IMG/VR virus record: IMGVR_UViG_3300014494_000005
Span: 124,001 to 188,000 of that record
Direction: 5' to 3' (one strand)
Length of the DNA stretch: 64,000 bases
In this document: positions 5,398 to 61,941 of the stretch, one piece after another
How positions within the stretch are numbered: the first letter of the stretch is position 1
How the letters are laid out: each line of letters starts with the position of its first letter
Notes under the pieces: model-generated
What the model saw: only the letters and a program-made list of their open reading frames with translations
Database searches by the model: none
What the model was told of the DNA's origin: nothing
Position numbers and translations under genes: made by a program

Positions 5398-6504
5398 TTA
5401 TAAAGTAAATTTTTCTTGCTTTCTAGCTTTTTTTCTCAATTCGTTAACTTCTCTATAAGCATTAGGGTCAAATTTTTCTCTTTTAACTATACTTACAAGA
5501 TGATTAAATTCATTTTCAGTAATCACTTGACCAACATAACTATTATTAGTTTCTTTTAAAACATAAGATTTTGGTGCTTTTGCAAAAGTTGATTGTCCTT
5601 CTGTATCAAGAGTTGCATCAAAAGTAAGTTCAAGTAGTTCTTGAATCTTTTCCTGAACATTAGCTGTCATATTCTGTTTTGTTTTCTTTAATGCTTTTTC
5701 AAGTAAATCAACAATATTTTCTTGATGAGTTTTTTTCATTTCATTATATGTTGAAGTAAATTCTTTTCCAGAACTTTTCTTCTTAATTTCAGAAATGATA
5801 GCCAAAGAACCATAACAGTCACGAATCATCAAATCCCATACCTGTTCAGCATATGTGAATGAAGGAAATTTGTCTATTGCAACAATTTCACCATCTATTA
5901 AAACAATAATACCAATAAGATTACGTGGACGTTCAAAATGTGCAATAAACTGTTCAAGTTTCTTATCATATTTTTCGAAATATACATTCAAGTAATTACC
6001 TGTACCAGATTGAGTATCACTACCCAATTTCTGAATAGCAGGATAAATTCTTGAATAACCACCTGTTTGTCCAATTGTATCAAATAACATTTCACGCATT
6101 GATACGGGTATCATACGAAATTCATTAGTTCCACAAAAATAACCTGTTTGTCCACCTTGTACACAACCTGCATCATGATAAGTGGTATTTGCATATTTTT
6201 CCAAATAACCCGCCTTTATCATACCATGATTTTGAGCACTTTGTTTAGTCATAACAGCCATTTGAGTAGGTACAATAACTTCTTTATTTTCTTTATTAGT
6301 AAAACTAATTTGACCATAAGTTTGATTACCTGCTTGAAGCGAAGTTAATGGATTCGCAAATCTAGTATCCAATGAGTTTTCTTCATCAGTTGTCAATGTT
6401 ATTATTGACATATTCATAATAGATTGAATAATAATATTTCCATTTGAATCTTTATGTGGTCTACATCCCTTTAAAAGTTCAGTAAATTCTCTTTGATTAT
6501 TCAT
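5398..6504 (-). CDS. ARPP-1 / DUF6569-like protein
   Basis: 368 aa; KQSAQNH...GCVQGGQ and GIIVLIDGEIVAIDKF resemble the family's KQNR...CVEQGRW and G....I.G.....D.F motifs (recognised by eye). Confidence 0.6.
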   Translation of the reverse strand: MNNQREFTELLKGCRPHKDSNGNIIIQSIMNMSIITLTTDEENSLDTRFANPLTSLQAGNQTYGQISFTNKENKEVIVPTQMAVMTKQSAQNHGMIKAGYLEKYANTTYHDAGCVQGGQTGYFCGTNEFRMIPVSMREMLFDTIGQTGGYSRIYPAIQKLGSDTQSGTGNYLNVYFEKYDKKLEQFIAHFERPRNLIGIIVLIDGEIVAIDKFPSFTYAEQVWDLMIRDCYGSLAIISEIKKKSSGKEFTSTYNEMKKTHQENIVDLLEKALKKTKQNMTANVQEKIQELLELTFDATLDTEGQSTFAKAPKSYVLKETNNSYVGQVITENEFNHLVSIVKREKFDPNAYREVNELRKKARKQEKFTL

Positions 6505-7067
6505 AATTTTTTAATTTTAATGTTATTAATTTTACATTCGTTTAAATATGCCTCATATGCTAATTTTTCATTCGAATATCTACCAATATATTTAATCTTT
6601 CCATTAATTGTAATTCTACTAACCCAAGGATTAGTTTTATCGTTTGGAGAAAATGAAACTCCAATATAATTAGAACTACTTTTCATTTTCTGTCTTGCAT
6701 GATGAGTATTTTCTCTTGCAGTACACCATTCTAAATTATTTAATATATTATCTTTTTTATTACCATTTTTATGATTAATTTGTTTATAATTAAATGGATT
6801 TAAAAGAAATGCATTTGCTACTAATTTATGTACTAAATATGCTTTATTAATACCTTTCTTACCTAATGAAACCATTAAATATCCACCATTTATTTGATAT
6901 GTATTTTTCAATGAACCTTTTAATTTTCGTTTAACACCCATTTTATTTATCACAAATCTATCAACACTTCTTAATCTACCAAAATTACTTATTTGATAAT
7001 ATCCTTCATAATCAATAACATCCTTCCATTTTTCAAATAAAAATAATTTTAATTTATCAAGTATCAT
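6501..7067 (-). CDS. NUMOD4-HNH(-AP2) homing endonuclease
   Basis: WKDVIDYEGYYQISNFGRLRS (NUMOD4); VHKLVA..F...INHKNGNKKDN..NLEWCT..EN (HNH); YIGVS...W...I...YIGRY (AP2-like). Confidence 0.9.
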   Translation of the reverse strand: MILDKLKLFLFEKWKDVIDYEGYYQISNFGRLRSVDRFVINKMGVKRKLKGSLKNTYQINGGYLMVSLGKKGINKAYLVHKLVANAFLLNPFNYKQINHKNGNKKDNILNNLEWCTARENTHHARQKMKSSSNYIGVSFSPNDKTNPWVSRITINGKIKYIGRYSNEKLAYEAYLNECKINNIKIKKL

Positions 7068-7075
7068 ACAAATTA

Positions 7076-8710
7076 TTAATCGTTTATATTAATTTTTTTA
7101 ATTCTTTTAACAGGTGCTGCTTCAAGAGCCAATACCTGATTTTCCAACCAACGTTTTGTATCAATTTCAAGCAATCTTGCATTGATTTGAGGCTGTAATG
7201 CGACTGGATTATTTATTGCCATTGTGACAACACCTTCACCCAATTTTCTTACATTAGCACCCATTTCAGCACTTGTAATTGGTGATATTTGGAACATTGG
7301 AATATTCCTACCACTTTCTGCTTTCCAAATTGAAATAACTTCATTAGTCAATCCATCATAAGCATTTTCATAACCATCTGTTAAAATAAAAATTGCATCA
7401 TATGGTTTTAAAGAATTTTCTTCTTTTAACAAATCAATAAATGATGTTGCCAAATCAGTAATTTCACCTCTAGTATTTACTCTGTTAGATTCTTTTGCTG
7501 AAGCAGTTAGAACCAATGCAGTAAAATCTGCAATAGCCATTGGTGTATTTTTTGATTCATTTTTATCACCAGTCATAGATACACTTTTATCGACAATAAC
7601 ACCAATATTCTGGTAAAAGAATCCCTGAATTTTTTTCTTTTGTGCAAGTTTTACAATTGCTGACCTAATTTCGTCAGTAAAACCATTTTCATAACCAGTT
7701 TTGTAAAGTGCAAGAAAATCAGTTGCTTTTTCCAAATCAACAGTTTTTTCAACACCCAACTTTGCAGTTGATTTGGTTTGACGAACCTGCTGATTTACAG
7801 AAGTAACTTCAACATTCTTACGAATAAGTGCTTTTGTTGCTTCTTTCTGAATATCAGTTGACCACATTGAATGATATTGTGGATGTTTTACACTTGAAAT
7901 TAAACCAAGTAAAACTTCTTCTGGTACATTTTTAATACCAGTAATATCAATTTTTGCTTTCTGATATTCACTTAAAAGAGGAAATTCAGTTGCATTATAT
8001 GCTACGCCACTATCTTTTTTAAATAAAAATAATAACAATTTGAATGCTTTAATTGAATCACCATTGAAATATTTCAATATACATTCATTTACAATACTCA
8101 TTTCTTTTTCACTTCCAAGCAAAGTTGCTCCATTAATATTTATTTGTTTTTGAGCAATTGAAAGTAATATTGATGTTTTCTTAACACCATATGCATGCCT
8201 AAGTACTTCAGCAATTTTATTACGATATTTCATTGAATAGAATTCAAGATTTGCTTGACCCCAAATAAAACCAAGCATAATTTTTCTTGTTCTTTCATTG
8301 TTTACTTTTTCATTCTTCAAATCAATGAAAAGACGTAATACATATGGTAAACCATTTTCGCCAAGATTGTTTAATGCAGAAAGTACTGCCTTATCACTTA
8401 AACCATTATCATACCAATCAATTGGATTAACAATATTACATGCTCCACCCCTTAAAGTATTTTTGAATTCATTCAAAAGTACTTCAGAAACAAATCTACC
8501 AGTAGCTCCTTTTTGACTTGCTATAATCAATGGGAGTTCCTTTGAAAGTTTATACAGGTTCTTTATTTGACCCTGAATTGCTTTCATTTGTTCGTCTTTA
8601 CTGTGATAGTAAGTTGCTGAACTTTTACTACCAGATGCAATAGTAAGACCATCAATTAATGATTGCTTAACTGTTGCCAACATTTTCTGTGTTAATACCA
8701 AATTTTCCAT
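7076..8710 (-). CDS. Divergent Ro60/TROVE-like RNA-binding protein with C-terminal vWA domain
   Basis: MIDAS VDKSVSM, TDLA, IFILTDGYEN; N-terminal SGSKSSATYY and MKYRNK...VLRHAY echo Ro60 GxxxGTYY and KYxxR..DLLRLxH; likely start MENL at 8710 (8770 overlaps upstream gene). Confidence 0.65.
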   Translation of the reverse strand: MENLVLTQKMLATVKQSLIDGLTIASGSKSSATYYHSKDEQMKAIQGQIKNLYKLSKELPLIIASQKGATGRFVSEVLLNEFKNTLRGGACNIVNPIDWYDNGLSDKAVLSALNNLGENGLPYVLRLFIDLKNEKVNNERTRKIMLGFIWGQANLEFYSMKYRNKIAEVLRHAYGVKKTSILLSIAQKQININGATLLGSEKEMSIVNECILKYFNGDSIKAFKLLLFLFKKDSGVAYNATEFPLLSEYQKAKIDITGIKNVPEEVLLGLISSVKHPQYHSMWSTDIQKEATKALIRKNVEVTSVNQQVRQTKSTAKLGVEKTVDLEKATDFLALYKTGYENGFTDEIRSAIVKLAQKKKIQGFFYQNIGVIVDKSVSMTGDKNESKNTPMAIADFTALVLTASAKESNRVNTRGEITDLATSFIDLLKEENSLKPYDAIFILTDGYENAYDGLTNEVISIWKAESGRNIPMFQISPITSAEMGANVRKLGEGVVTMAINNPVALQPQINARLLEIDTKRWLENQVLALEAAPVKRIKKININD

Positions 8711-8720
8711 AATATATAAT

Positions 8721-9551
8721 TTATTTATTAAGTGCAAGTTGAATTTTCTTTGATTTTTCAACAAAATCACGTAATCTATTTGTTACATTTTTACTCATTT
8801 CATCAGTAAGATGACCACCCTTTGCCATAAGCATTGTTTCAGCAACTACCGCAATACCTTCTAATATTATTGCTTGGTCATGTTGCATTTCATCAATCCT
8901 CATTTTCAGTTCCAAATAATCCTCAGAAACATTTTGTTCAGGATAAAACGCTTGATTTAACCATTTTAATCCTTCTTCACCAACCATAATACGTTTTATA
9001 TATTTGTTACTTTCTAATGGTTCGCATGTAAAATAACCTTTATTAATAAATTCTGGAAAAGGTTTATTATGTTCATCAAGAATTCCTCTCAAACGTAATT
9101 GTTCATAAATTTTATATCTTCCGGTCTTACAATTACTATTATTCTTCAAAACATTTGTTGCTTCACTTAAAGAAAAAACAATTTTTCTTATTTTTTCTTG
9201 TGTTGCAGTAATTCCATATTTGAACAACTCTTTTATTCTGTCATTACACCAAAAATAAAATTCTGGTGAAAGCCACTGTGCAAAAATTAAAGCAATATCT
9301 TCATGTATCCAAGTTCCTTGTGCAGATTTATCATTACCACCCTGCCTAATCATCACTAAATCAGCCGTATTGATATTCTTCAACTCGGCATATTTAGCAA
9401 TAATTCTTTGTGCAGTATCAGTTTTTAACCAAAAATTTGGTTTAACATCAAAAAGATTTGCCATTTCCGTGGCATTTATCATAACATTACTGCCTGTGAG
9501 AAATGAAATTTCATTTCCTTCAAATTCAAATTTTTTAATTTCTTCTTTCAT
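8721..9551 (-). CDS. KilA-N domain DNA-binding protein with antirepressor (ANT/KilAC-like) domain
   Basis: INATEMA...GTWIHEDIALIFAQWLSPEF; GRYKIYEQLRLRGIL..P..EFINKGYF..GEEGLKWL. Confidence 0.85.
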   Translation of the reverse strand: MKEEIKKFEFEGNEISFLTGSNVMINATEMANLFDVKPNFWLKTDTAQRIIAKYAELKNINTADLVMIRQGGNDKSAQGTWIHEDIALIFAQWLSPEFYFWCNDRIKELFKYGITATQEKIRKIVFSLSEATNVLKNNSNCKTGRYKIYEQLRLRGILDEHNKPFPEFINKGYFTCEPLESNKYIKRIMVGEEGLKWLNQAFYPEQNVSEDYLELKMRIDEMQHDQAIILEGIAVVAETMLMAKGGHLTDEMSKNVTNRLRDFVEKSKKIQLALNK

Positions 9552-9603
9552 GATATTTTAAATTGAATTTTTATATTATCAAAATCTAATTAATTTTTGA
9601 TGC

Positions 9604-9634
9604 CAAATATATAAAAAGTTTATTTAAAATCCAA
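9604..9634 (-). promoter_or_regulatory. Bacteroidota-type promoter for the KilA-N / Ro-like / HNH / ARPP operon
   Basis: Minus strand TTG (9632-34), 20 nt, TATATTTG (9604-11). Confidence 0.7.
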
Positions 9635-9676
9635 CTATTATACCAAAAGAATATCAAAATATTACAAAAAACAAAA

Positions 9677-9723
9677 AAATGGGCAAGTATTGATTAATTT
9701 CTTAATCAAATCCCCGCCCATTT
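9677..9723 (-). terminator. Terminator-like hairpin closing the ncRNA array
   Basis: AAATGGGC/GCCCATTT outer and TTGATTAA/TTAATCAA inner stems, followed by a T-run on the minus strand. Confidence 0.65.
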
Positions 9724-9755
9724 CTATTTTAGAAAAACACTTCTTTCAAATAAGA

Positions 9756-9847
9756 GAAGAAGTTTAGTTGTAATTTGGTAAGTTTGTCCCCTCTCTCACG
9801 AAGGGGATTTCATTTTTACAATTTACTGTATTCACAACAAGTTCTTC
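9756..9847 (-). ncRNA. Y-RNA-like structured RNA C (conserved stem + TCCCCT/AGGGGA hairpin)
   Basis: GAAGAA/TTCTTC and GTTGTGA/TTACAAC stems; motif AAGAACTTGTTGTGAATACAGTA shared with neighbours. Confidence 0.7.
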
Positions 9848-10013
9848 AGTATTCCTTTTTTAGAAAAAAAAGCACTTCTGCTCGAAAAACCATTTTTAAC
9901 CAATTAAATGTTAGGTGATATAATTTGTTTTTGTAAAAAACTCTGATATCAACAACTAAAAACTTGCGGGTTTAATTTGTTATTATTAACAACTTTTTAC
10001 CGCTTTATAACTT

Positions 10014-10158
10014 AGGGAACAATTTTAAAGTATTTGTTGTTTTTGTTTTGCAAGTTTAACTGACTTGTGACTTAACCAGCTTGTCTAATTATTCAATTTT
10101 GGCGAATAATGATGGACTCGAACCATCGAAATTACTGTAAACACTTTACGTTTTCCCT
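10014..10158 (-). ncRNA. Y-RNA-like RNA B containing a circularly permuted tRNA-like domain (YrlA-like)
   Basis: AGGGAA/TTCCCT and TAAAGTGTTT/AAATACTTTA stems enclose T arm GATGG-TTCGAGT-CCATC, acceptor ATTATTC-GCCA-AAATT-GAATAAT, D arm GAC-AAGCTGGTTAA-GTC, anticodon arm CAAGT-CAGTTAA-ACTTG. Confidence 0.8.
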
Positions 10159-10196
10159 TTGTACTATTATGCAATTATATATCGCATTTAAATTTG

Positions 10197-10333
10197 TGGG
10201 GAGAGCAGGATTTGAACCTGCACATCATTGTTTTAACGACAATTGCTTTACCTTTTACTGAAAATACAATCAGTTCTCTCTGTTAAGAGAGCAGTGAGAT
10301 AGTATTTTTTGTTTTTTATTTTGCTATCTCCCC
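10197..10333 (-). ncRNA. tRNA-like RNA D with ~65-70 nt D-loop insertion carrying the shared stem motif
   Basis: Acceptor GGGGAGA/TCTCCCC, T arm GCAGG-TTCAAAT-CCTGC, anticodon arm ATTGT-CGTTAAA-ACAAT; insert AATACTATC..CTCTCT-TAAC-AGAGAG-AACTGATTGTATTTTCAGTA. Confidence 0.8.
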
Positions 10334-10359
10334 ATATATTTTAAAGAACTTTAAAAATT

Positions 10360-10448
10360 AGAAGAAATTTGTTAGTATTGTTTTTCTGCCGTCACTCATG
10401 GACGGCATACATTATTTTTCAACTGCTGTAAACACTATCAGTTCTTCT
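10360..10448 (-). ncRNA. Y-RNA-like structured RNA A (conserved stem + TGCCGTC/GACGGCA hairpin)
   Basis: AGAAGAA/TTCTTCT and TAGTGTT/AATACTA stems; motif AAGAACTGATAGTGTTTACAGCA. Confidence 0.7.
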
Positions 10449-10525
10449 CATTTTGATTAAGTTGGCGCAGTCTTCTTTTGTGACTTACTTTCAACGGAGT
10501 GTATGCCGTGACCTCTTAATCTTTG

Positions 10526-10597
10526 TAGCGGGAGAGGGACTTGAACCCCCGACCTTTTGGTTATGAGCCAAACGAGATGCCTCTTCTCCACCCCGCA
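10526..10597 (-). tRNA. tRNA-Met(CAT), initiator-like
   Basis: TGCGGGGTGGAGAAGAGGCATCTCGTTTGG-CTCATAA-CCAAAAGGTCGGGGG-TTCAAGT-CCCTCTCCCGCTA; T1:T72 mismatch; CCA not encoded. Confidence 0.92.
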
Positions 10598-10644
10598 ATA
10601 TACTTTTTAATCTTTTTAAAGAACGTTATATCATTTTGACGATG

Positions 10645-10675
10645 CAAATCTATAACACATTTTTTAATTGTGCAA
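10645..10675 (-). promoter_or_regulatory. Bacteroidota-type promoter for the tRNA/ncRNA array
   Basis: Minus strand TTG (10673-75), 20 nt, TAGATTTG (10645-52); GTATTTAT motif also at 10721-28. Confidence 0.7.
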
Positions 10676-10768
10676 GTTTTTTTCAAAAAAAATAAAAAAT
10701 ATTTTACAACGTCTGGAAAAATAAATACGTAGAAATTTCAAAAAAGTTATTGTTTTTTATAAAATATT

Positions 10769-13700
10769 TTAATCATCTTTTATAACTCTCTGATTTTGAC
10801 GTGCTTTATTTAAAATATTAAATACATTTTTTTCATTTTCTTGTGGCTCATCAGGGTCAATTAATAATTTATTTTCCAATTCTTTTATATTAATATTTTT
10901 ATTTGTTCTTTCAATTAATGGTTTTATTGTTAAATTTTCTTCTTTAATCTCACGATTTTTTTCAACAATATTATTATCAATTTCTTTAACAAAAACTCCC
11001 GGTGGAACAAATTTAGTTAAATCTAATGATTTTTTAATATCTTCTAATTTTACTTCTGGTTGATTAATAATTTCATTAATTGTACTACCTGATTCACCAT
11101 TCCATTCAAATGGTTCTTTTTTTTCATCCCTTTTTATTTGTTCTTCATGAAATATTACTTCAGGATGAATTATTTCTTCATTTAATTCTTCAACCACACC
11201 ATTAATTTCCAGTATTGCTTCGTTGGCAATATCAATTATTTGTTTAATTTCATTTTGATTTAAATCTATTCTTGTAGTACTAATATGAATATTTTCTATT
11301 TGTTTAACAGGAACACCATGTATCTCACCTTCAATCTCTCTTCTCATTTGTTCAATAAAATCACTACTTTCAGCTTTAATCGGTTCGGTCTTAACAATAG
11401 GTTCTTCTTTTTTTACAATAGGTTCGTCAGTATTTGTTTTTATTACAGTTTCATTTTCTTTTACTGTATTTTGTTCAATTTCAAATTCAGAATTGTTTTG
11501 CAATAATCTATTAATTTCAGTAGAAGATAAATTTACAACATCAACAGCATTTTTAGAATCTTCAGCAAGTTGACTAACAACAACATGCATTTTATTTGCA
11601 GTACTTTCAACTTTATTTACATCATTTTCATCGTAATGTTTCAGTTTATTCTTTACAGGATATTTTGAGTCAGTTATAATAATTTGCATTGTATCATTAT
11701 TAAAAATACAATCTTCAAATGTTTGTCCATCTTTTGCAAATCTTGCTTTAAGAATACTAATATTAGCAAAATTTGCATCTTGTTGTGCTGGTGTTTTAGC
11801 AACTGACATAAAAAAATGTGCTTTTTGAATTCTTTTAATATTGCCACCTGTTTGTTGTGCTCCAACAATTGCAGCACCAAAACCAGAACGATTAGTTTGA
11901 ATTGCTGACCATGCAGGTATATCAAAATCTGAAGCAAGTGCTTCAAAAGATTTTACTATTTGTAATTCAGCTTCATTTCTATCTGGTGATTTTTTATGAG
12001 ATTCAAGGCAATCAAGATAATCTATTACAAGTATATCAAATTTAAAACCATATTTTTTTTGATATCCTATCATCCAATTTTTAATATCCAACATTGTAGT
12101 ATTTTCCTGACTAAATTGTTTAATCAAAAGTCTACCTTTTCCTTCTAATGATTCTGCTTTTTCTGTTGCAATTTTAAAAACTCTTGCATTTTCATCCTCA
12201 TCATCAAGTTTACTTAATGCAGATTTTGCCCAAATAGTATAATGTTTACGTTTAATCTGTTCTTTTGTATCTTCAATTATAATTTGTGCAACATTTTTTT
12301 CTTGTTCATAAGCAGTATTAGCAATAATTGTAAGTGCAGTAGTATTATGTGTTAAAATATAATCATCAATTATATATAAATGGTCATTATTTTCAACATA
12401 TATACATGTTGCATCTTCTTCATGTGAATATTCAATATTTTTTATAAATTTATTATATTCATATTTATCACGAATTACAATTCTATCAAGTTTGGTAGGT
12501 AAAGTACATGGTTTAATACCATTGTTTGGAAAACTTATGGTTAAACAATAATTTTTTTTACCTAAAACTTTTACACCATTTTTATTATACGATTTAATTT
12601 TTTCGTTAATTCTACATGTTCCACCCAATGATAATACTAATTCTCGAACATTTTTTGATAATTCTTTTGAAACTGTAGAATAAATAATTGAATGATTTTT
12701 ACCAACACCACCATCTGAATCAATTAAACCTTGTAATAATTTTTCTCTATATTCGATACAATTATATAAATAAATATTAGGAATAAATTTATTAGTTGAA
12801 TCAGTACCATATAAATTAAGTTCTGTTTCTAAAACATTTCTCGAATTTATTAATGATATTCGATATAATTTTTTATAATTTTCTTTTCTTCCTTCATATT
12901 CATGAACAATAACATTTTTTTCAAGATTACATATTTTATCAACAATAAATAAATCTGATGTTATAATGTGTGGTTGATTTTTTCTTGTTAAACATCCATC
13001 ACCCAATAATACCCCCATTATATAAGGGTCAATTTTAACCTCTAATTTATTAAATTGAATTGGTAATACATTAGGTAATCTATAATTTAAATTATTTTTT
13101 ATTTTAATATCTTCCATAATTTCAGACGTTTTTAATATCTGAAATGTATGGTCAGGAATACTTAATGTTTTACCATTTATATTAGTTTTTTGATTTCTTT
13201 GTTTAAATGAATTAACTGCCCATAAATGTTCTACATCACAATAAGATATTGTTTGGTCTGAAAAAGTAACTTTATATATTTTTCTTTTACCTTGTGGATA
13301 TACTGCTAATATTTTTTGTTTTTTTCCGTCACTACCAAAAATATAATCATTAACTTTTAATGTACCATTTTCAACCCAACCATTTGGTGTTAATACTTTA
13401 TGGCTATTTGGCAAGGCTTTTCCTACACCTGATGGTGTTAATATTAAACCAATTTCACCTTTACCAAGACCACCACCAGTCAATGAATCTATTACACCAA
13501 TTCCAGTAGGTATTGGTTGTCTAAATTCTTTTCTTAATGCTTTTTCAATACCTTCTATTACTTCTTCACAATCATCTTCATCCTCACCAATATGTGTAAT
13601 TTTTTGAAATTTTTCTTCAATTGCTGCAATAACATATTTACTTTTAATTTCACCATTTTTTACTTTATCAATAATACCTTCAGCTAATTTACGATATTCT

Positions 13701-14089
13701 TGTTGTTTAATAAAAGAATTTGTAGATTTTTGTATAACATCTCCATCATAAAGCATTTGTTTATTAATAATTCTTTCATTCCAAAGTTCAATACGTTTAA
13801 TTACAGCAAATAATGATTCTTCTTCAATTACATTATTTGGAGTTTTATATTTATTAATTGCTTGATGAATACTTTGATTTTGAAGATTTGGAACTTTCTG
13901 AAATTCTTTAAAATATTCTAAAATAATTAAAAATAATCTTCTAAGATTTGGGTCATCAAAATATTCAATTGCTATATCTGGAATTATTTTTTCTGCAAAC
14001 TCTGGTTCAACTAACAACTGCCACATAAGATGTTGTTGAAATTCAGGACCTAAATATGATGATAATGTATTTTCTGTTATATCTGCCAT
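10769..14089 (-). CDS. Replicative DNA helicase (gp41/DnaB family) with intein and acidic C-terminal extension
   Basis: IPTGIGVIDSLTGGGLGKGEIGLILTPSGVGK|TT Walker A split by intein; DILVIDYLD; WSAIQTNR; ILKARF. Confidence 0.92.
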   Translation of the reverse strand: MADITENTLSSYLGPEFQQHLMWQLLVEPEFAEKIIPDIAIEYFDDPNLRRLFLIILEYFKEFQKVPNLQNQSIHQAINKYKTPNNVIEEESLFAVIKRIELWNERIINKQMLYDGDVIQKSTNSFIKQQEYRKLAEGIIDKVKNGEIKSKYVIAAIEEKFQKITHIGEDEDDCEEVIEGIEKALRKEFRQPIPTGIGVIDSLTGGGLGKGEIGLILTPSGVGKALPNSHKVLTPNGWVENGTLKVNDYIFGSDGKKQKILAVYPQGKRKIYKVTFSDQTISYCDVEHLWAVNSFKQRNQKTNINGKTLSIPDHTFQILKTSEIMEDIKIKNNLNYRLPNVLPIQFNKLEVKIDPYIMGVLLGDGCLTRKNQPHIITSDLFIVDKICNLEKNVIVHEYEGRKENYKKLYRISLINSRNVLETELNLYGTDSTNKFIPNIYLYNCIEYREKLLQGLIDSDGGVGKNHSIIYSTVSKELSKNVRELVLSLGGTCRINEKIKSYNKNGVKVLGKKNYCLTISFPNNGIKPCTLPTKLDRIVIRDKYEYNKFIKNIEYSHEEDATCIYVENNDHLYIIDDYILTHNTTALTIIANTAYEQEKNVAQIIIEDTKEQIKRKHYTIWAKSALSKLDDEDENARVFKIATEKAESLEGKGRLLIKQFSQENTTMLDIKNWMIGYQKKYGFKFDILVIDYLDCLESHKKSPDRNEAELQIVKSFEALASDFDIPAWSAIQTNRSGFGAAIVGAQQTGGNIKRIQKAHFFMSVAKTPAQQDANFANISILKARFAKDGQTFEDCIFNNDTMQIIITDSKYPVKNKLKHYDENDVNKVESTANKMHVVVSQLAEDSKNAVDVVNLSSTEINRLLQNNSEFEIEQNTVKENETVIKTNTDEPIVKKEEPIVKTEPIKAESSDFIEQMRREIEGEIHGVPVKQIENIHISTTRIDLNQNEIKQIIDIANEAILEINGVVEELNEEIIHPEVIFHEEQIKRDEKKEPFEWNGESGSTINEIINQPEVKLEDIKKSLDLTKFVPPGVFVKEIDNNIVEKNREIKEENLTIKPLIERTNKNINIKELENKLLIDPDEPQENEKNVFNILNKARQNQRVIKDD
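12344..13417 (-). mobile_element. Class 3 (Ala1, WCT) intein with LAGLIDADG endonuclease, 358 aa
   Basis: Starts ALPNSHKVLTPNG, ends ILTHN|T; HLW (block B), ATCI (block F); VLLGDG and GLIDSDG motifs. Confidence 0.88.
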
Positions 14090-58226: not shown

Positions 58227-59891
58227 ATGATTGAGAAAAATATATCAAAATCGGAATTAATTAATTATTTTTTAAATAATAATGGTTCGGGATATAAAAC
58301 AAAAGAAAAACACATATTAATTAAATTTATTGGTTTGATTGATTTAATTAACAATTATCATGATAATTTTTTTAAAACAAATGATTTTCCATTTACACAA
58401 AAATTATATAATTATTTATATAATATAATTGAAATTCCTAAATGTAATAATTGCGGAATACATATTAAATGGAGAGGTATATTTAGTGAAGGTTATTTAA
58501 CATATTGTTCAAAACAATGTAAAAATTCTAGTAAAATTAGAATTGAAAAAGCAAAAAAAACCTGTTTGAAAAAATATGGTGTTGATTCACCATTAAAATT
58601 CAATATCTTTAAAAAGAAAAGAAGTGATACTATTCTAAATAAATATAATATTAGTAATATCTTTGAACATCCAGATATTAAAGAAAAAACAAAACAAACA
58701 AATTTATTGAAATATGGGAAAGAATTTGCAATCCAATCAGAAATAATAAAAAATAAAAGAAAAGATAATAATTTCCTTAAATATGGTGTAGAAAATCCAT
58801 TATCATTAACCATAAATAAACAAAAAAAATCTAAACTGAATAAAGATTATTTTGAAAAAAAAATAAAACAAAGAAATTATATTGTTTTAAATTATTTGGA
58901 AAATGATATTATTGTAATAAAACATCCAGATGGTCACATTTTTGAAACACCCAGACATATTGCTAATAATAGATTTAATACAAACGCAGAATTGTCAACA
59001 AAATTACTTCCATTGGGTGGTAGTATCTCAACTGGTGAAATTGAAATTAGAGAATTTTTAAAAACCCTAAATATAAATTATATTACTGGTAATAGAAGTA
59101 TATTGTTTGGTAATGAAATTGATATATATTTACCAGATAATAAATTGGGTATTGAGTTCGATGGACTTTATTGGCATTCAAATTTATTTAAAGATAAAAA
59201 TTATCATCTCAATAAAACTGAAGAATGTGAACAACTAGGCATACAATTGCTTCATATCTTTGAAGATGAATGGATATACAAAAAAGAAATTGTCAAGTCA
59301 ATTATTAAATCTAAATTAGGTATAGTTGAAAATAAAGTTTTTGCAAGAAAATGTGTTATCAAAAAAATTGATAATATAACTTGTTCTAATTTCTTAAATA
59401 ACAATCACATACAAGGTAATATTAATTCTAAGGTTAAAATTGGTTTGTTTTATAATAATGATTTAGTGTCGGTTATAACTTTTGGTAAAAAACGTATTGC
59501 AATGGGTAATAAAACCAATATTGAAGGTGAATATGAGATGTACAGATTTTGTAATAAACTTAATACAAGTGTTATTGGTGGGGCAAGTAAGTTATTAAGT
59601 TATTTTACAAAAAATTATAAACCTAAGTCAATTTTAACATTTGCAGACAGAAGATATAGTCAAGGTAATTTATATAAACAATTAGGATTTAATTATATAA
59701 AAAATACTGAACCTAACTATTGGTATTTCAAAAAAAATGAAATAATTAGATATTATCGTTTTAAATTTAGAAAAGATGTTTTGGTTAAACAAGGTTTTGA
59801 TAAAAATAAAACAGAAAAGGAAATAATGCAAGAAAATCAATATAATTATATATATGATTGTGGTAACATGAAATATATGTTAATTTATTAA
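58227..59891 (+). CDS. Putative homing endonuclease (Vsr-like nuclease + conserved C-terminal domain)
   Basis: KYGV repeats; EIDIYLP..IEFDGLYWHS..HIFEDEW; ARKC..NHIQG..RFCNKL..GGASKL; paralog of 60343..61941. Confidence 0.75.
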   Translation: MIEKNISKSELINYFLNNNGSGYKTKEKHILIKFIGLIDLINNYHDNFFKTNDFPFTQKLYNYLYNIIEIPKCNNCGIHIKWRGIFSEGYLTYCSKQCKNSSKIRIEKAKKTCLKKYGVDSPLKFNIFKKKRSDTILNKYNISNIFEHPDIKEKTKQTNLLKYGKEFAIQSEIIKNKRKDNNFLKYGVENPLSLTINKQKKSKLNKDYFEKKIKQRNYIVLNYLENDIIVIKHPDGHIFETPRHIANNRFNTNAELSTKLLPLGGSISTGEIEIREFLKTLNINYITGNRSILFGNEIDIYLPDNKLGIEFDGLYWHSNLFKDKNYHLNKTEECEQLGIQLLHIFEDEWIYKKEIVKSIIKSKLGIVENKVFARKCVIKKIDNITCSNFLNNNHIQGNINSKVKIGLFYNNDLVSVITFGKKRIAMGNKTNIEGEYEMYRFCNKLNTSVIGGASKLLSYFTKNYKPKSILTFADRRYSQGNLYKQLGFNYIKNTEPNYWYFKKNEIIRYYRFKFRKDVLVKQGFDKNKTEKEIMQENQYNYIYDCGNMKYMLIY

Positions 59892-59898
59892 TTTTATA

Positions 59899-60246
59899 TT
59901 ATTCAGGTAATCTACCAGTTCTTTGATACATTCTAAATTCATCCTTACCAAGACTTTCAATAGTTCTTTTTGGTTTTATTGCAACATCAATTTTTATTTT
60001 AATTGGTTCATTAACTAATTCAATTTTTGGTAATTCATTAATTGCTACTTGTTCATCTGAAAGATTATTATTCTCAATAATTATTTCTTGTGGTATATCT
60101 AAAAGAATTTCTGGTTGTACTTCAGATTTTTCTTCAACAATTGGTTTATTATCAACTTCTTCTATTTCAATTATTTCTTGTTTTTTAGTTTTTTCTATGG
60201 ATTGTTCAATTTTATTGATTTTATCCCTTTTACTTTTTTTTGTCAT
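59899..60246 (-). CDS. Hypothetical protein
   Basis: 115 aa; GTATTTAT at 60278-85 upstream. Confidence 0.6.
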   Translation of the reverse strand: MTKKSKRDKINKIEQSIEKTKKQEIIEIEEVDNKPIVEEKSEVQPEILLDIPQEIIIENNNLSDEQVAINELPKIELVNEPIKIKIDVAIKPKRTIESLGKDEFRMYQRTGRLPE

Positions 60247-60295
60247 TATTTCTTATTTAAAATTATGTTATTTTTATATAAATACTTGAAAATGA

Positions 60296-60324
60296 AAAAG
60301 ACCCACTAAATAAGTGAGTCTTTT
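60296..60324 (-). terminator. Intrinsic terminator
   Basis: aaaagacccact/agtgagtctttt. Confidence 0.65.
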
Positions 60325-60342
60325 CAATTTATAATTTATAAA

Positions 60343-61941
60343 TTATGCTCCAACATCAATAAATTTAATATTGCCACAATCATATATTCTTGGAATTTTT
60401 CTTTCTGACATTATTTGATGTTCAGTTTTATTTTTATCAAATCCTTGTTTAACTAAAACATCTTTTCTAAATAAAAATCTATGTTTTCTTTCCTTTCCAA
60501 CAACATACCAATAATTAGGTGCTGTGTTATATTTTAAATTAAATCCTAATTGTTTATATAAATTACCATTTGAATATCTTCTATTAGCAAAACTAATCAC
60601 ATTAAATGGTTTATATTTTAATTTAAAAAAAGAATATAATTTACTAGCACCGCCAACAACAATAGTATTAAGTTTATTGCAAAAACGTAACATTTCATAC
60701 ACATTATCATTTTTTATTTTATTACCAAGAACGTTTCTTAATTTTCCAAATGTCATAATAGATACTAACTCATTGTTATAATATAATCCTAATTTAATGG
60801 ATGCATTAACATTACCTTGTATATGATTTTTTATTAAAAATTCGAAGGCTATTTTAGGATTAATTTCTTTTATTTGACATTTTCTTGCAAATATTTTATT
60901 ATTAATAATACCTAATTTACTTTTTATCATTGATTCAATAATATTATATTTTTCAAGTAATTCATCTTCAAAAAAATGCAATAATGTAATATTTTTTTCT
61001 TCACATTTTTTTGTTTTATTAATATGATAATCGTCATTTATATAATATTCGGAATGCCAATGAAGTCCATTTATTTCAATTGCTAAATTATATGAAGGTA
61101 TATAAATATCCAATTCACCATCAATTGTTTTTCTATCATTTGGAATATAATTAATATTATTATTTTTTAAAAATTTACATATTTTTAATTCAAATGTTGT
61201 TCTTGGTGACCCAATTGGTTGTAATATTGTTGATAATTCAACATCATGATTTAATCTATTTACTAATAATTTTCTATTGTTTTCAAAAACATGACCATTA
61301 GGATGTGAAACTTTTATATTATCATCATTAAATTCTAATATTGAATATCCTTTTTCTGAAAATCTTTTCTTTAATAATTTATCTCTATTTAGTTGAACTT
61401 TTATTAAACCACGATTTATAATTTTATTACCATGCGTAGCATATGTTTTTTTCATATTATGAGTTGCTAATAATCTAATACTATTAACTTTAAATGTACT
61501 ATCAACACCATATTTTTTAAATACCGCTTCTTTCGACTTTTTAATTCTAATTTCTTTATTTTCTGGAATACTTTGCCAAATTTCTCTACATTTTTTAGAA
61601 CAAAATTTTCTTTCATATTTTATTCTTTCAATAAATAATTTATTACATATTAAGCAATGTCTATTTTCTTTCGATTTTTTCTTTTTATTTAAACCAGAGC
61701 ATTTATATGAACAAAATTTTTTCTTTTCTTTCTTTTTTGATTTAAAAATCTTTTCACAATACTCACACTTTTTTTCAACATAAAATTTATTATCTTCTTG
61801 TGCTCTATGTGCTAATTTACAATCTTTAGAACAAAATTGTTTTTCCCTTCCTTTTTTTACATAAAAAATATTATTACAATGTTTGCAAATTAAATTAACT
61901 ATTGTTGCCATATATGATGAATTTATATTTTTACTAACCAA
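60343..61941 (-). CDS. Putative homing endonuclease with CxxC..FCS..C zinc fingers
   Basis: Three C..C...FCS..C repeats; ELDIYIP..IEINGLHWHS..FFEDE. Confidence 0.75.
   Translation of the reverse strand: MVSKNINSSYMATIVNLICKHCNNIFYVKKGREKQFCSKDCKLAHRAQEDNKFYVEKKCEYCEKIFKSKKKEKKKFCSYKCSGLNKKKKSKENRHCLICNKLFIERIKYERKFCSKKCREIWQSIPENKEIRIKKSKEAVFKKYGVDSTFKVNSIRLLATHNMKKTYATHGNKIINRGLIKVQLNRDKLLKKRFSEKGYSILEFNDDNIKVSHPNGHVFENNRKLLVNRLNHDVELSTILQPIGSPRTTFELKICKFLKNNNINYIPNDRKTIDGELDIYIPSYNLAIEINGLHWHSEYYINDDYHINKTKKCEEKNITLLHFFEDELLEKYNIIESMIKSKLGIINNKIFARKCQIKEINPKIAFEFLIKNHIQGNVNASIKLGLYYNNELVSIMTFGKLRNVLGNKIKNDNVYEMLRFCNKLNTIVVGGASKLYSFFKLKYKPFNVISFANRRYSNGNLYKQLGFNLKYNTAPNYWYVVGKERKHRFLFRKDVLVKQGFDKNKTEHQIMSERKIPRIYDCGNIKFIDVGA

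Follow-up and report, generated by a model that had tools for sequence, protein, structure and literature searches.

A phage array of Y-RNA-like RNAs that carry tRNA cargos on a conserved handle and lie upstream of a divergent Ro60-like gene

Four RNAs with a common handle in a phage genome

A stretch of 64,000 nucleotides from the IMG/VR virus record IMGVR_UViG_3300014494_000005 (positions 124,001 to 188,000; this whole 64-kb stretch is called the window) contains on its minus strand an array of four RNAs, named A, D, B and C in their order on that strand. All four share a two-part stem, the handle, which is combined with different cargos, two of them whole tRNAs, and the array is followed on the same strand by a gene for a protein with a Ro60-like fold. 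Ro60 and the Y RNAs are conserved from bacteria to humans. The system is most likely a phage-borne variant of the Ro60/Y-RNA kind that is distinct from the YrlA family proper. The interval 9400-10800 was inspected, the array being read on the minus strand; the coordinates of all features are collected in Table 1.

Occurrence of the handle motif

The ungapped 23-nt motif described for the four RNAs in the first-pass annotation was found at exactly four sites in the 64 kb when searched as a degenerate 23-mer, even with two mismatches allowed. All sites are located on the minus strand and within 625 nt (10424-10446 in A, 10256-10278 in D, 10133-10155 in B and 9824-9846 in C). Shuffled sequence yielded 0.06 matches on average and no shuffle reached four, a test that is partly circular as the 23-mer was built from the four copies themselves. 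The 12-nt core GTRWWTWCAGYA gave the same outcome in the window.

Because the 23-mer was derived from its own copies, independent support for the motif comes from external viral contigs, which were scanned with a narrower pattern that fits A and C only. In total, 105 viral contigs matched, of which 59 carry two to five copies on the same strand. The copies of these contigs are spaced like those of the window, usually with a tRNA-Met adjacent, and the order of the array elements is kept across related loci.

Structure and covariation of the handle

Five parts make up the handle: an outer stem; an internal loop of fixed 2x4 size, in which CU faces RAAY; an inner stem, whose conserved core is GU(G/A)UU:AAUAC and which includes a G.U position; the sequence UACAGUA, which is unpaired; and a 3′ linker rich in A and C. 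Outer and inner stem are both present in the minimum free energy (MFE) folds of A, B, C and D. Measured against shuffles, the folds have z-scores of -3.45 for A, -4.58 for D, -2.31 for B and -2.95 for C. When 57 distinct small elements were aligned, paired cells made up 91.8%, compared with 37-61% when the partners are slid against each other. The inner pair 15-95 of this alignment occurs as UA (20), AU (19) or GC (16), and pair 18-92 as GU (25), UA (15) or UG (10). The same pairing and covariation picture was obtained for 30 contiguous insert-type handles, and over about 90 related phage elements the two-part stem covaries. The outer stem also covaries between classes (GAAGAA/UUCUUC, GGGAA.A/U.UUCCC, GAGAG.A/U.CUCUC).

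The geometry is rigid. Between the inner and the outer 3′ strand there are exactly 6 nt in 131 of 133 flanking-type elements, and near-invariant nucleotides stand at several unpaired positions, namely the C that follows the outer stem, the CAG, and AA in the 3′ loop. The covarying two-part stem had thus been read correctly in the first pass, as had the unpaired (U/A)CAG(U/C)A behind the inner stem and the A/C-rich linker in front of the 3′ strand; covariation of the 5′ and 3′ arms in homologs, looked for as a check, was seen, with compensatory changes across the related loci. Two features fix the minus strand as the RNA strand: G.U and U.G pairs are frequent, and the tRNA parts are oriented this way. 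The former had been the ground for the same assignment before.

The handle occurs in two circular permutations, as flanking arms and as a closed insert. In A, B and C the arms flank the cargo as first described for all four RNAs; this does not hold for D, whose 3′ strand precedes the motif. As in known Y RNAs, a paired stem is formed by a helix that is interrupted by an internal loop, the module being circularly permuted in D. A kissing dimer via the palindromic UACAGUA was considered and dropped, as positions 14 and 18 lack covariation.

Four similar copies within 700 bp, arms in inverted repeat and homing-endonuclease genes nearby are what would be expected of repeats that act at the DNA level, as recombination sites or miniature mobile elements. 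This is almost certainly not their role: the G.U and U.G pairs would be A-C mismatches on the other strand, compensatory changes accompany the drift of the sequence, the element order is conserved across loci, and the cargos are oriented tRNAs on the strand of the tRNA-Met.

Invariant unpaired nucleotides, rigid spacing and natural circular permutation are also shared with the hammerhead and twister ribozymes, and phage tRNA regions are known ribozyme sites. It is nevertheless very improbable that the handle is a small ribozyme which processes the polycistronic array by self-cleavage, with or without ligation. No ribozyme family (hammerhead, twister, hairpin, pistol, hatchet, HDV-like) was detected with Rfam at E-values up to 10, the two internal loops are stacked in series and offer no junction for docking, and a cut within the D loop of D would ruin the tRNA. 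The tight co-occurrence with one protein family described below fits protein binding better. Several likenesses noticed by eye were discarded since they are not conserved across the family, namely a hammerhead (CUGAUAG in A, similar to CUGAUGA), a K-turn, an integron attC site, a CRISPR-repeat mimic (Cas12a, Cas13b) and loop B of the hairpin ribozyme.

The RNAs and their tRNA cargos

Core and geometry of the handle are kept, whereas the cargo may be as small as a 25-nt hairpin or as large as a 110-nt tRNA, which bears out the earlier reading as a constant handle with a variable insert. The whole-tRNA inserts of B and D, the permutation of D and a fifth RNA between B and C had been missed.

RNAs A and C carry GC hairpins with CAUGAG-type loops, and the MFE fold of A consists of exactly the helices listed. 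C is always the last element of the array. As a side observation, CUUCUUC, the outer 3′ strand of C, has a second possible pairing partner in the downstream GAAAGAAG (9736-9761, minus strand). Equivalents of this alternative hairpin exist in the related loci L005, L053 and L067, and it may act as a structural switch at the array end.

In RNA D the handle interrupts the D loop of a complete tRNA, which contains the acceptor stem GGGGAGA/UCUCCCC, the D region, the anticodon arm, a 5-nt variable loop and the T arm. The handle is carried as a closed insert and not as flanking arms, because the partner strand AAUACUAUC precedes the motif and a UAAC loop caps the outer stem. Against the Rfam tRNA model, positions 9-63 were matched with 25.2 bits, and 85.5 bits were obtained with R1, a covariance model of the contiguous handle. 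When the handle is deleted in silico, 31 of the 33 elements of this interrupted-tRNA class are recognized as tRNAs by ARAGORN, and the same applies to D. Its anticodon loop CGUUAAA has the anticodon UUA, preceded by G33, and would read the UAA stop codon.

RNA B consists of handle arms around a circularly permuted tRNA, which is opened at the variable loop, where the handle departs. From 5′ to 3′ it comprises the T arm, the acceptor 3′ strand, G73 and an encoded CCA, a short loop, the acceptor 5′ strand, UA, the D arm with GG, the anticodon arm (5 bp/7 nt) and an A/C-rich linker (Table 1). The T loop reads GGUUCGAGUCC, the closed acceptor stem has 7 bp, and U8, A14, G18 and G19 are present; the anticodon loop CAGUUAA contains the anticodon GUU with A33. 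After circular rejoining, all 43 unique cargos of the permuted class become tRNAs for ARAGORN. In their encoded form neither B nor D was reported by this standard tRNA finder. The tRNA counts of such phages are underestimated, because both RNAs are missed entirely by tRNA finders.

In related loci further cargos were found, namely unpermuted tRNAs in which leader and trailer pair to give the handle, and lone anticodon-like stem-loops of 5 bp and 7 nt. The anticodon loops of the cargos are hypervariable on a conserved body (L003 to L105), with CUU, GUU, AUU, AUG, UGA, UUA, UUU, CGU, GUA and others. Position 33 is not U in six of seven distinct loops with a G34-U35 anticodon, while other loops have U33 in 58 of 63 cases. 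Handle-flanked tRNAs with the stop-codon suppressor anticodons UCA or UUA were observed in L291, L279 and other related arrays, which hints at stop-codon recoding in part of the phage group.

With whole tRNAs among the cargos, the handle might be a splicing or circularization signal that is cut and ligated, so that D loses it like an intron and the cargo ends of B are joined. The latter would give a circular intermediate, to be opened by RNase P and 3′ trimming into a normal tRNA, as with the permuted tRNA genes of Cyanidioschyzon and Thermofilum. In favour are the genuine permutation of the tRNA in B, with G-CCA encoded, the break in the D loop of D, the lack of a contiguous canonical tRNA in either RNA before joining, and the two circular permutations of the handle, which resemble an intron next to a permuted intron-exon arrangement. 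Against this, no bulge-helix-bulge motif is present; by reading of the sequence, the junctions consist of the unpaired UACAGUA plus 2-7 nt on one side and an A/C-rich strand of 12-16 nt on the other. Junction lengths differ between loci and their sum is not constant, so that cuts at fixed sites would not produce a canonical variable loop; the inconstant sum is also why B did not pass a molecular-ruler test of precise splicing. No joining would be needed for the many cargos that are just hairpins or anticodon stem-loops, and the YrlA RNA of Mycobacterium smegmatis is cut by RNase P and yet unligated (PMC4201824). A Pfam search of 47 open reading frames (ORFs) of the window revealed no TROVE domain, RtcB, other RNA ligase, PNPase or splicing endonuclease, although most of these ORFs lack any Pfam match and most of the phage genome lies outside the window. 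Splicing, which would not conflict with Ro60 binding, is regarded as improbable.

The unpermuted tRNAs of related loci bear on another explanation, in which the handle is a leader-trailer processing stalk (a site for a double-strand-specific ribonuclease, or a clamp) of odd phage tRNAs and the neighbouring protein is unrelated. ARAGORN places the 5′ end of these tRNAs inside CAGUA, the handle being the leader-trailer duplex, and about 16 bp with an internal loop resemble phage RNase III sites. A stalk would not account for sequence conservation at unpaired positions, for a handle lying within the D loop of D, for hairpin forms devoid of cargo or for the co-variation of handle sequence with protein clade. 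It has accordingly been given only a slim chance.

The fifth RNA, X, is conserved and structured and has no handle motif. Of the six pairs in its stem UGAUAU/AUAUCA, five have changed in a compensatory way over 18 loci, and an invariant stretch CACCUAACAUUU...GGUUAA.AAUGGUUUU (also given as CACCUAACAUUU...GGUUAAGAAUGGUUUU) is followed by a hairpin and a U run. X has no Rfam match, and its single-sequence fold is not significant.

The Ro60-like protein and its linkage to the array

For the identification of shared neighbours, the ORFs around 65 arrays were clustered. In 53 of these arrays a gene of about 545 aa is located 171-1726 nt downstream on the same strand; in the remaining 12 the locus breaks off no more than 723 nt past the last motif, which means that all 53 informative arrays carry the gene. 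Bacterial and phage Y RNAs are likewise recognized by a Ro60/TROVE gene close by on the same strand. When loci were fetched via the protein instead, at least one upstream handle on the same strand was found in 68 of 77 viral loci, and two of the other nine have no upstream sequence. Usually three to five handles are present per locus, and up to seven.

Four more of these nine loci, with relatives of the protein at 46, 39, 28 and 26% identity (L290, L295, L298 and L299), lack the exact motif pattern and have recognizable but diverged handles directly upstream, which consist of a G-rich outer stem, (A/G)AC-UG, an inner stem and UU-NCAG-NA and include insert-type and tRNA-cargo kinds. Further copies were found with model R1, among them an insert-type handle in the locus with 46% identity (E = 5.6e-4).

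The window's copy of the gene has its conserved start at Met20 (about position 8713), giving a protein of about 544 aa. It is composed of about 380 N-terminal residues of helical repeats and a C-terminal vWA domain with a DxSxS MIDAS motif. D393, D464 and G465 are invariant, DxSxSMxG and SDGYEN are present, and the DxSxS...DG residues are invariant or nearly so. A structure was predicted with AlphaFold2 from an alignment of 102 sequences, diverse relatives taken from an exhaustive hidden Markov model search, and reached a predicted local distance difference test score (pLDDT) of 92.0 and a predicted template modelling score (pTM) of 0.90. In a Foldseek search of the PDB, the 12 best matches were all Ro60/Rsr (E-values of 1.8e-7 to 3.7e-4), and the next match followed at E = 0.016. 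These comprise human and Xenopus Ro60, Deinococcus Rsr and the Ro60 of the Thermus phage phiLo, with alignments of 537-604 columns and template modelling (TM) scores of 0.41-0.51. From 25 close orthologues, a first model reached a pLDDT of no more than 64.7; its 12 best PDB matches, too, were all Ro60/Rsr. The model and its full-length structural matches thus display the architecture of Ro60-type proteins, a helical-repeat ring followed by a vWA domain with MIDAS.

The protein downstream of the array is most likely a very divergent Ro60/Rsr-type protein according to this model. Membership rests on the fold, because neither a TROVE nor a PDB match was obtained at the sequence level. The PHROGs search of the protein gave no match either. 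The clade, which the Pfam TROVE model does not see, comprises 360 clusters at 50% identity. Among GenBank phages a single relative was found, an unannotated protein with 28% identity in a 462-kb uncultured phage.

Proposed function

Motif, structure, covariation, tRNA identity of the cargos, gene linkage and Ro60-like fold are results of the analysis; physical binding, processing of the RNAs and a downstream function are inferences. It is considered likely, judging from sequence and structure prediction, that the handle binds the divergent Ro60-type protein and that the cargo is a tRNA-type effector module. The Ro60-like protein is the candidate binding partner because of its downstream linkage on the same strand, its structural matches to Ro60 only and the co-occurrence down to 26% identity. 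The four RNAs would then be Y-RNA-like noncoding RNAs of a large phage, transcribed as one array. The handle would be the Ro60-binding module and the counterpart of the conserved bulged helix into which the 5′ and 3′ ends of known Y RNAs pair, and the cargo an effector module that mimics or is a tRNA, as in bacterial YrlA. During infection, the ribonucleoprotein may tether the Ro60 ring to tRNA-binding partners or to host enzymes of RNA decay and repair, by analogy with Y RNAs that tether Ro60 to PNPase.

Several observations weigh against this proposal. All loci stem from related phages, so that the linkage could partly be plain synteny; that it is still seen at 26% protein identity argues against this. 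Between the array and the Ro60-like gene there is a terminator-like hairpin and, in the window, also a KilA-N gene. TM-scores of about 0.45 indicate a fold match to a distant relative. The Pfam TROVE model matches neither the protein nor its 24 orthologues nor 10 distant relatives, and a sequence-profile search of the PDB with the protein does not find Ro60. For the RNAs, Rfam at E-values up to 10 with permissive filters yielded no match of A to D to Y_RNA or another relevant family, where it is unconfirmed whether Rfam 15 has a separate YrlA model. The YrlA motif GNCGAAN0-1G, or CGAA, is absent from the 5′ strand of the handle, the window copies being AACUGAUAG, AACGUAAAG and AACUUGUUG.

A more far-reaching possibility, thought rather unlikely, is that the Ro60-like ribonucleoprotein is a counter-defence device that displays tRNA anticodon loops, as decoy or sensor or in the form of replacement tRNAs. 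In that case the handle would anchor on the Ro60 ring tRNAs that are whole or permuted, or else lone anticodon stem-loops, and the fast-changing anticodons, including the G34-U35 loops almost always without U33, would bait or sense host anticodon nucleases and other tRNA-targeting immunity. Alternatively, the cargos would be Ro60-tagged replacement tRNAs that resist such nucleases and queuosine insertion. The handle would be a portable tag that makes any tRNA-shaped RNA a Ro60 client.

Irrespective of such a role, a large and previously unrecognized clade of Ro60-like proteins and a new consensus of a putative binding stem are added to the Ro60 systems. The loci form a natural series in which one stem is placed on tRNA material in several topologies, four of them tRNA-derived, while the anticodons turn over quickly. 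The series can be read as a structure-function experiment done by nature, which suggests the anticodon stem-loop as the part that counts, and it links phage Ro60 systems to the conflict over host tRNAs.

Array layout, carrier phage and neighbouring genes

On the minus strand, the array has the order tRNA-Met, A, D, B, X, C and terminator. The element TAGATTTG upstream of the tRNA-Met fits TAnnTTTG, the consensus of Bacteroides promoters, and is a likely candidate for the start of the array transcript. At the other end, a conserved GC hairpin with a U run is the likely terminator; equivalents follow C in L005, L053 and L067. The first array gene is an ordinary tRNA-Met (CAU), which adjoins the arrays at the equivalent place in related loci.

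The carrier is a large myovirus, because a tail sheath and a T4-type baseplate protein are encoded in the window; contigs with the handle system reach 150-540 kb. Its host is probably a member of the Bacteroidota, given the TAnnTTTG promoter-like element and the bin names. A blastn search of the array region against GenBank phages matched the tRNA-Met only. A scan of cellular-genome contigs matched at least 120 loci; among the matches listed, real handles occur in L167 alone, a 2.3-kb contig in a Bacteroidota metagenome-assembled genome, the others being chance matches that lack the 3′ arm, and no cellular counterpart was seen among them.

Table 1. Features of the array and its surroundings in the window (minus strand unless indicated by an empty cell).
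Feature	Position	Strand	Basis or remark
Candidate Bacteroidota-type -7 promoter element TAGATTTG (TAnnTTTG), 5′ of tRNA-Met	10645..10652	-	direct sequence reading
tRNA-Met (CAU), first array gene	10525..10597	-	ARAGORN; Rfam tRNA 56.3 bits
Array span	9754..10450	-	
RNA A, flanking-type handle	10359..10450	-	motif, alignment, MFE fold
A, 5′ arm (outer AGAAGAA, inner UAGUGUU, then UACAGCA)	10424..10450	-	
A, cargo (hairpin GCCGUC-CAUGAGU-GACGGC)	10380..10423	-	
A, 3′ arm (AAUACUA, ACAAAU, UUCUUCU)	10359..10379	-	
RNA D, complete tRNA with handle in D loop	10197..10333	-	Rfam tRNA, MFE fold, ARAGORN, model R1
D, linker and handle	about 10255..10322	-	
D, inner strands	10298..10306 and 10262..10270	-	first strand is AAUACUAUC
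D, anticodon loop	10229..10235	-	
RNA B, handle arms around circularly permuted tRNA	10015..10157	-	sequence reading; MFE fold is permuted cloverleaf
B, 5′ arm	10133..10157	-	
B, T arm	10111..10127	-	
B, acceptor 3′ strand (7 nt)	10104..10110	-	
B, G73	10103	-	
B, CCA	10100..10102	-	
B, loop AAAUU	10095..10099	-	
B, acceptor 5′ strand	10088..10094	-	
B, D arm	10069..10085	-	
B, anticodon arm	10051..10067	-	
B, anticodon loop	10056..10062	-	
B, A/C-rich linker	10036..10050	-	
B, 3′ arm	10015..10035	-	
RNA X, conserved structured RNA between B and C	9862..9965	-	alignment A4, 18 loci
RNA C, flanking-type handle	9754..9850	-	motif, alignment, MFE fold
C, 5′ arm (GAAGAA, GUUGUGA, AUACAGUA)	9824..9850	-	
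C, cargo (hairpin CCCCUU..GAGGGG and ACAAACUUACC)	9775..9823	-	
C, 3′ arm (UUACAAC, UAAAC, UUCUUC)	9754..9774	-	
GC hairpin and U run, putative terminator	9671..9722	-	sequence reading; equivalents in related loci
Divergent Ro60/Rsr-like gene, proposed handle partner	7076..8770	-	ORF of 563 aa (7076-8713 from conserved start); conserved neighbour, AlphaFold2 and Foldseek
DnaB-like helicase (1106 aa)	10769..14089	-	upstream of array
KilA-N domain gene	8721..9551	-	
HNH/NUMOD4 homing endonuclease	6501..7067	-	downstream of Ro60-like gene
ARPP-1 domain protein	5398..6504	-	downstream of Ro60-like gene
Two large Mom-family fusion proteins	58227..61941		

Among the neighbouring genes, the DnaB-like helicase contains LAGLIDADG and Hom_end domains in the middle of the protein, which suggests an intein. 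The KilA-N gene is present in only about 21 related loci and looks like an insertion into the unit of array and Ro60-like gene. The ARPP-1 domain protein is a conserved neighbour in 32 loci, and Pfam ties its family to conflict systems. The two large proteins far from the array consist of Mom-family domains fused to endonuclease-like domains (Vsr, MTES_1575) and suggest DNA base modification in the carrier phage.

Comparison with known systems

A comparison with YrlA and Y RNAs had been recommended in the first pass. It proved the right lead, although no Rfam family matches the RNAs: with gathering as well as permissive thresholds, only the tRNA-Met and the partial tRNA in D were detected on the array. 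The genes of YrlA RNAs are located within 4 kb of Ro60 on the same strand, and the RNAs have the order T arm, closed acceptor-like stem and D arm (PMC4201824). In M. smegmatis, YrlA has a 7-bp acceptor stem, is cleaved by RNase P, receives CCA and is left unligated (PMC4201824). YrlA RNAs have been reported in 22 phages and are also known from mycobacteriophages (PMC4201824, Chen et al., 2014).

The array shares with these systems a Ro60-type gene on the same strand within a few kb, and ends that pair into a stem bearing the putative protein site. B has the same order of T arm, closed acceptor-like stem and D arm, keeps the nucleotides of the tRNA tertiary contacts and has the 7-bp acceptor stem of the M. 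smegmatis RNA; several Y RNAs per locus are usual. A and C lack a tRNA-like module, as does YrlB. In contrast, the handle consensus is AAC..GURUU-UACAGUA / AAUAC..RAAY instead of the YrlA motif GNCGAAN0-1G. The 5′-strand consensus of the handles reads GAAGAACUG.., and CGAA is limited to a subset of elements, namely certain B-type 5′ arms at other loci and certain 3′-strand loops. The parts are not recognized by Rfam and Pfam TROVE. B retains the full anticodon arm and opens at the variable loop, so that the Y stem does not replace the anticodon arm, and the handle is also found in the D loop of a normal tRNA (D), around unpermuted tRNAs, on bare anticodon stem-loops and on GC hairpins. The number of handles per locus and the hypervariable anticodons differ as well. 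The array is not classed as a YrlA member because of the missing Rfam match and GNCGAAN0-1G motif, the anticodon arm of B, the new topologies, the three to five handles and the non-TROVE protein.

In the Y RNAs of metazoans and Deinococcus, Ro60 is bound by a conserved bulged helix in which the two ends pair, and partners (PNPase in Deinococcus) are recruited by a variable loop or module. The RNAs of the array are modular in the same way, but their helix has no sequence similarity to this binding helix, and the Rfam Y_RNA model does not match.

The permuted tRNAs of Cyanidioschyzon merolae and Thermofilum pendens resemble B in that the 3′ half is encoded before the 5′ half and the flanks are paired. 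There, a bulge-helix-bulge motif, a splicing endonuclease and a circular intermediate are used, none of which was seen here; moreover, the break of B is at the variable loop and its flanks are a conserved handle of putative protein-binding type. A literature search on permuted or intron-bearing tRNA genes in phages found nothing relevant.

For jumbo phages, a TROVE protein with a tRNA-like partner has been noted as a possible RNA-repair platform (PMC7824862). The Thermus phage phiLo encodes two Y-like RNAs upstream of Ro60, which forms a complex with the host PNPase (PMC12135203; PDB 9KOP, 9L5Y). Like the phage of the window, phiLo has a Ro60-type protein with Y-like RNAs directly upstream, each built as stem, bulge and stem, and the phiLo Ro60 is among the structural matches of the protein described here. 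The phiLo RNAs, by contrast, are two in number, contain the CGAA motif and have no reported tRNA cargo, and the two proteins share about 12-14% identity in the structural alignment.

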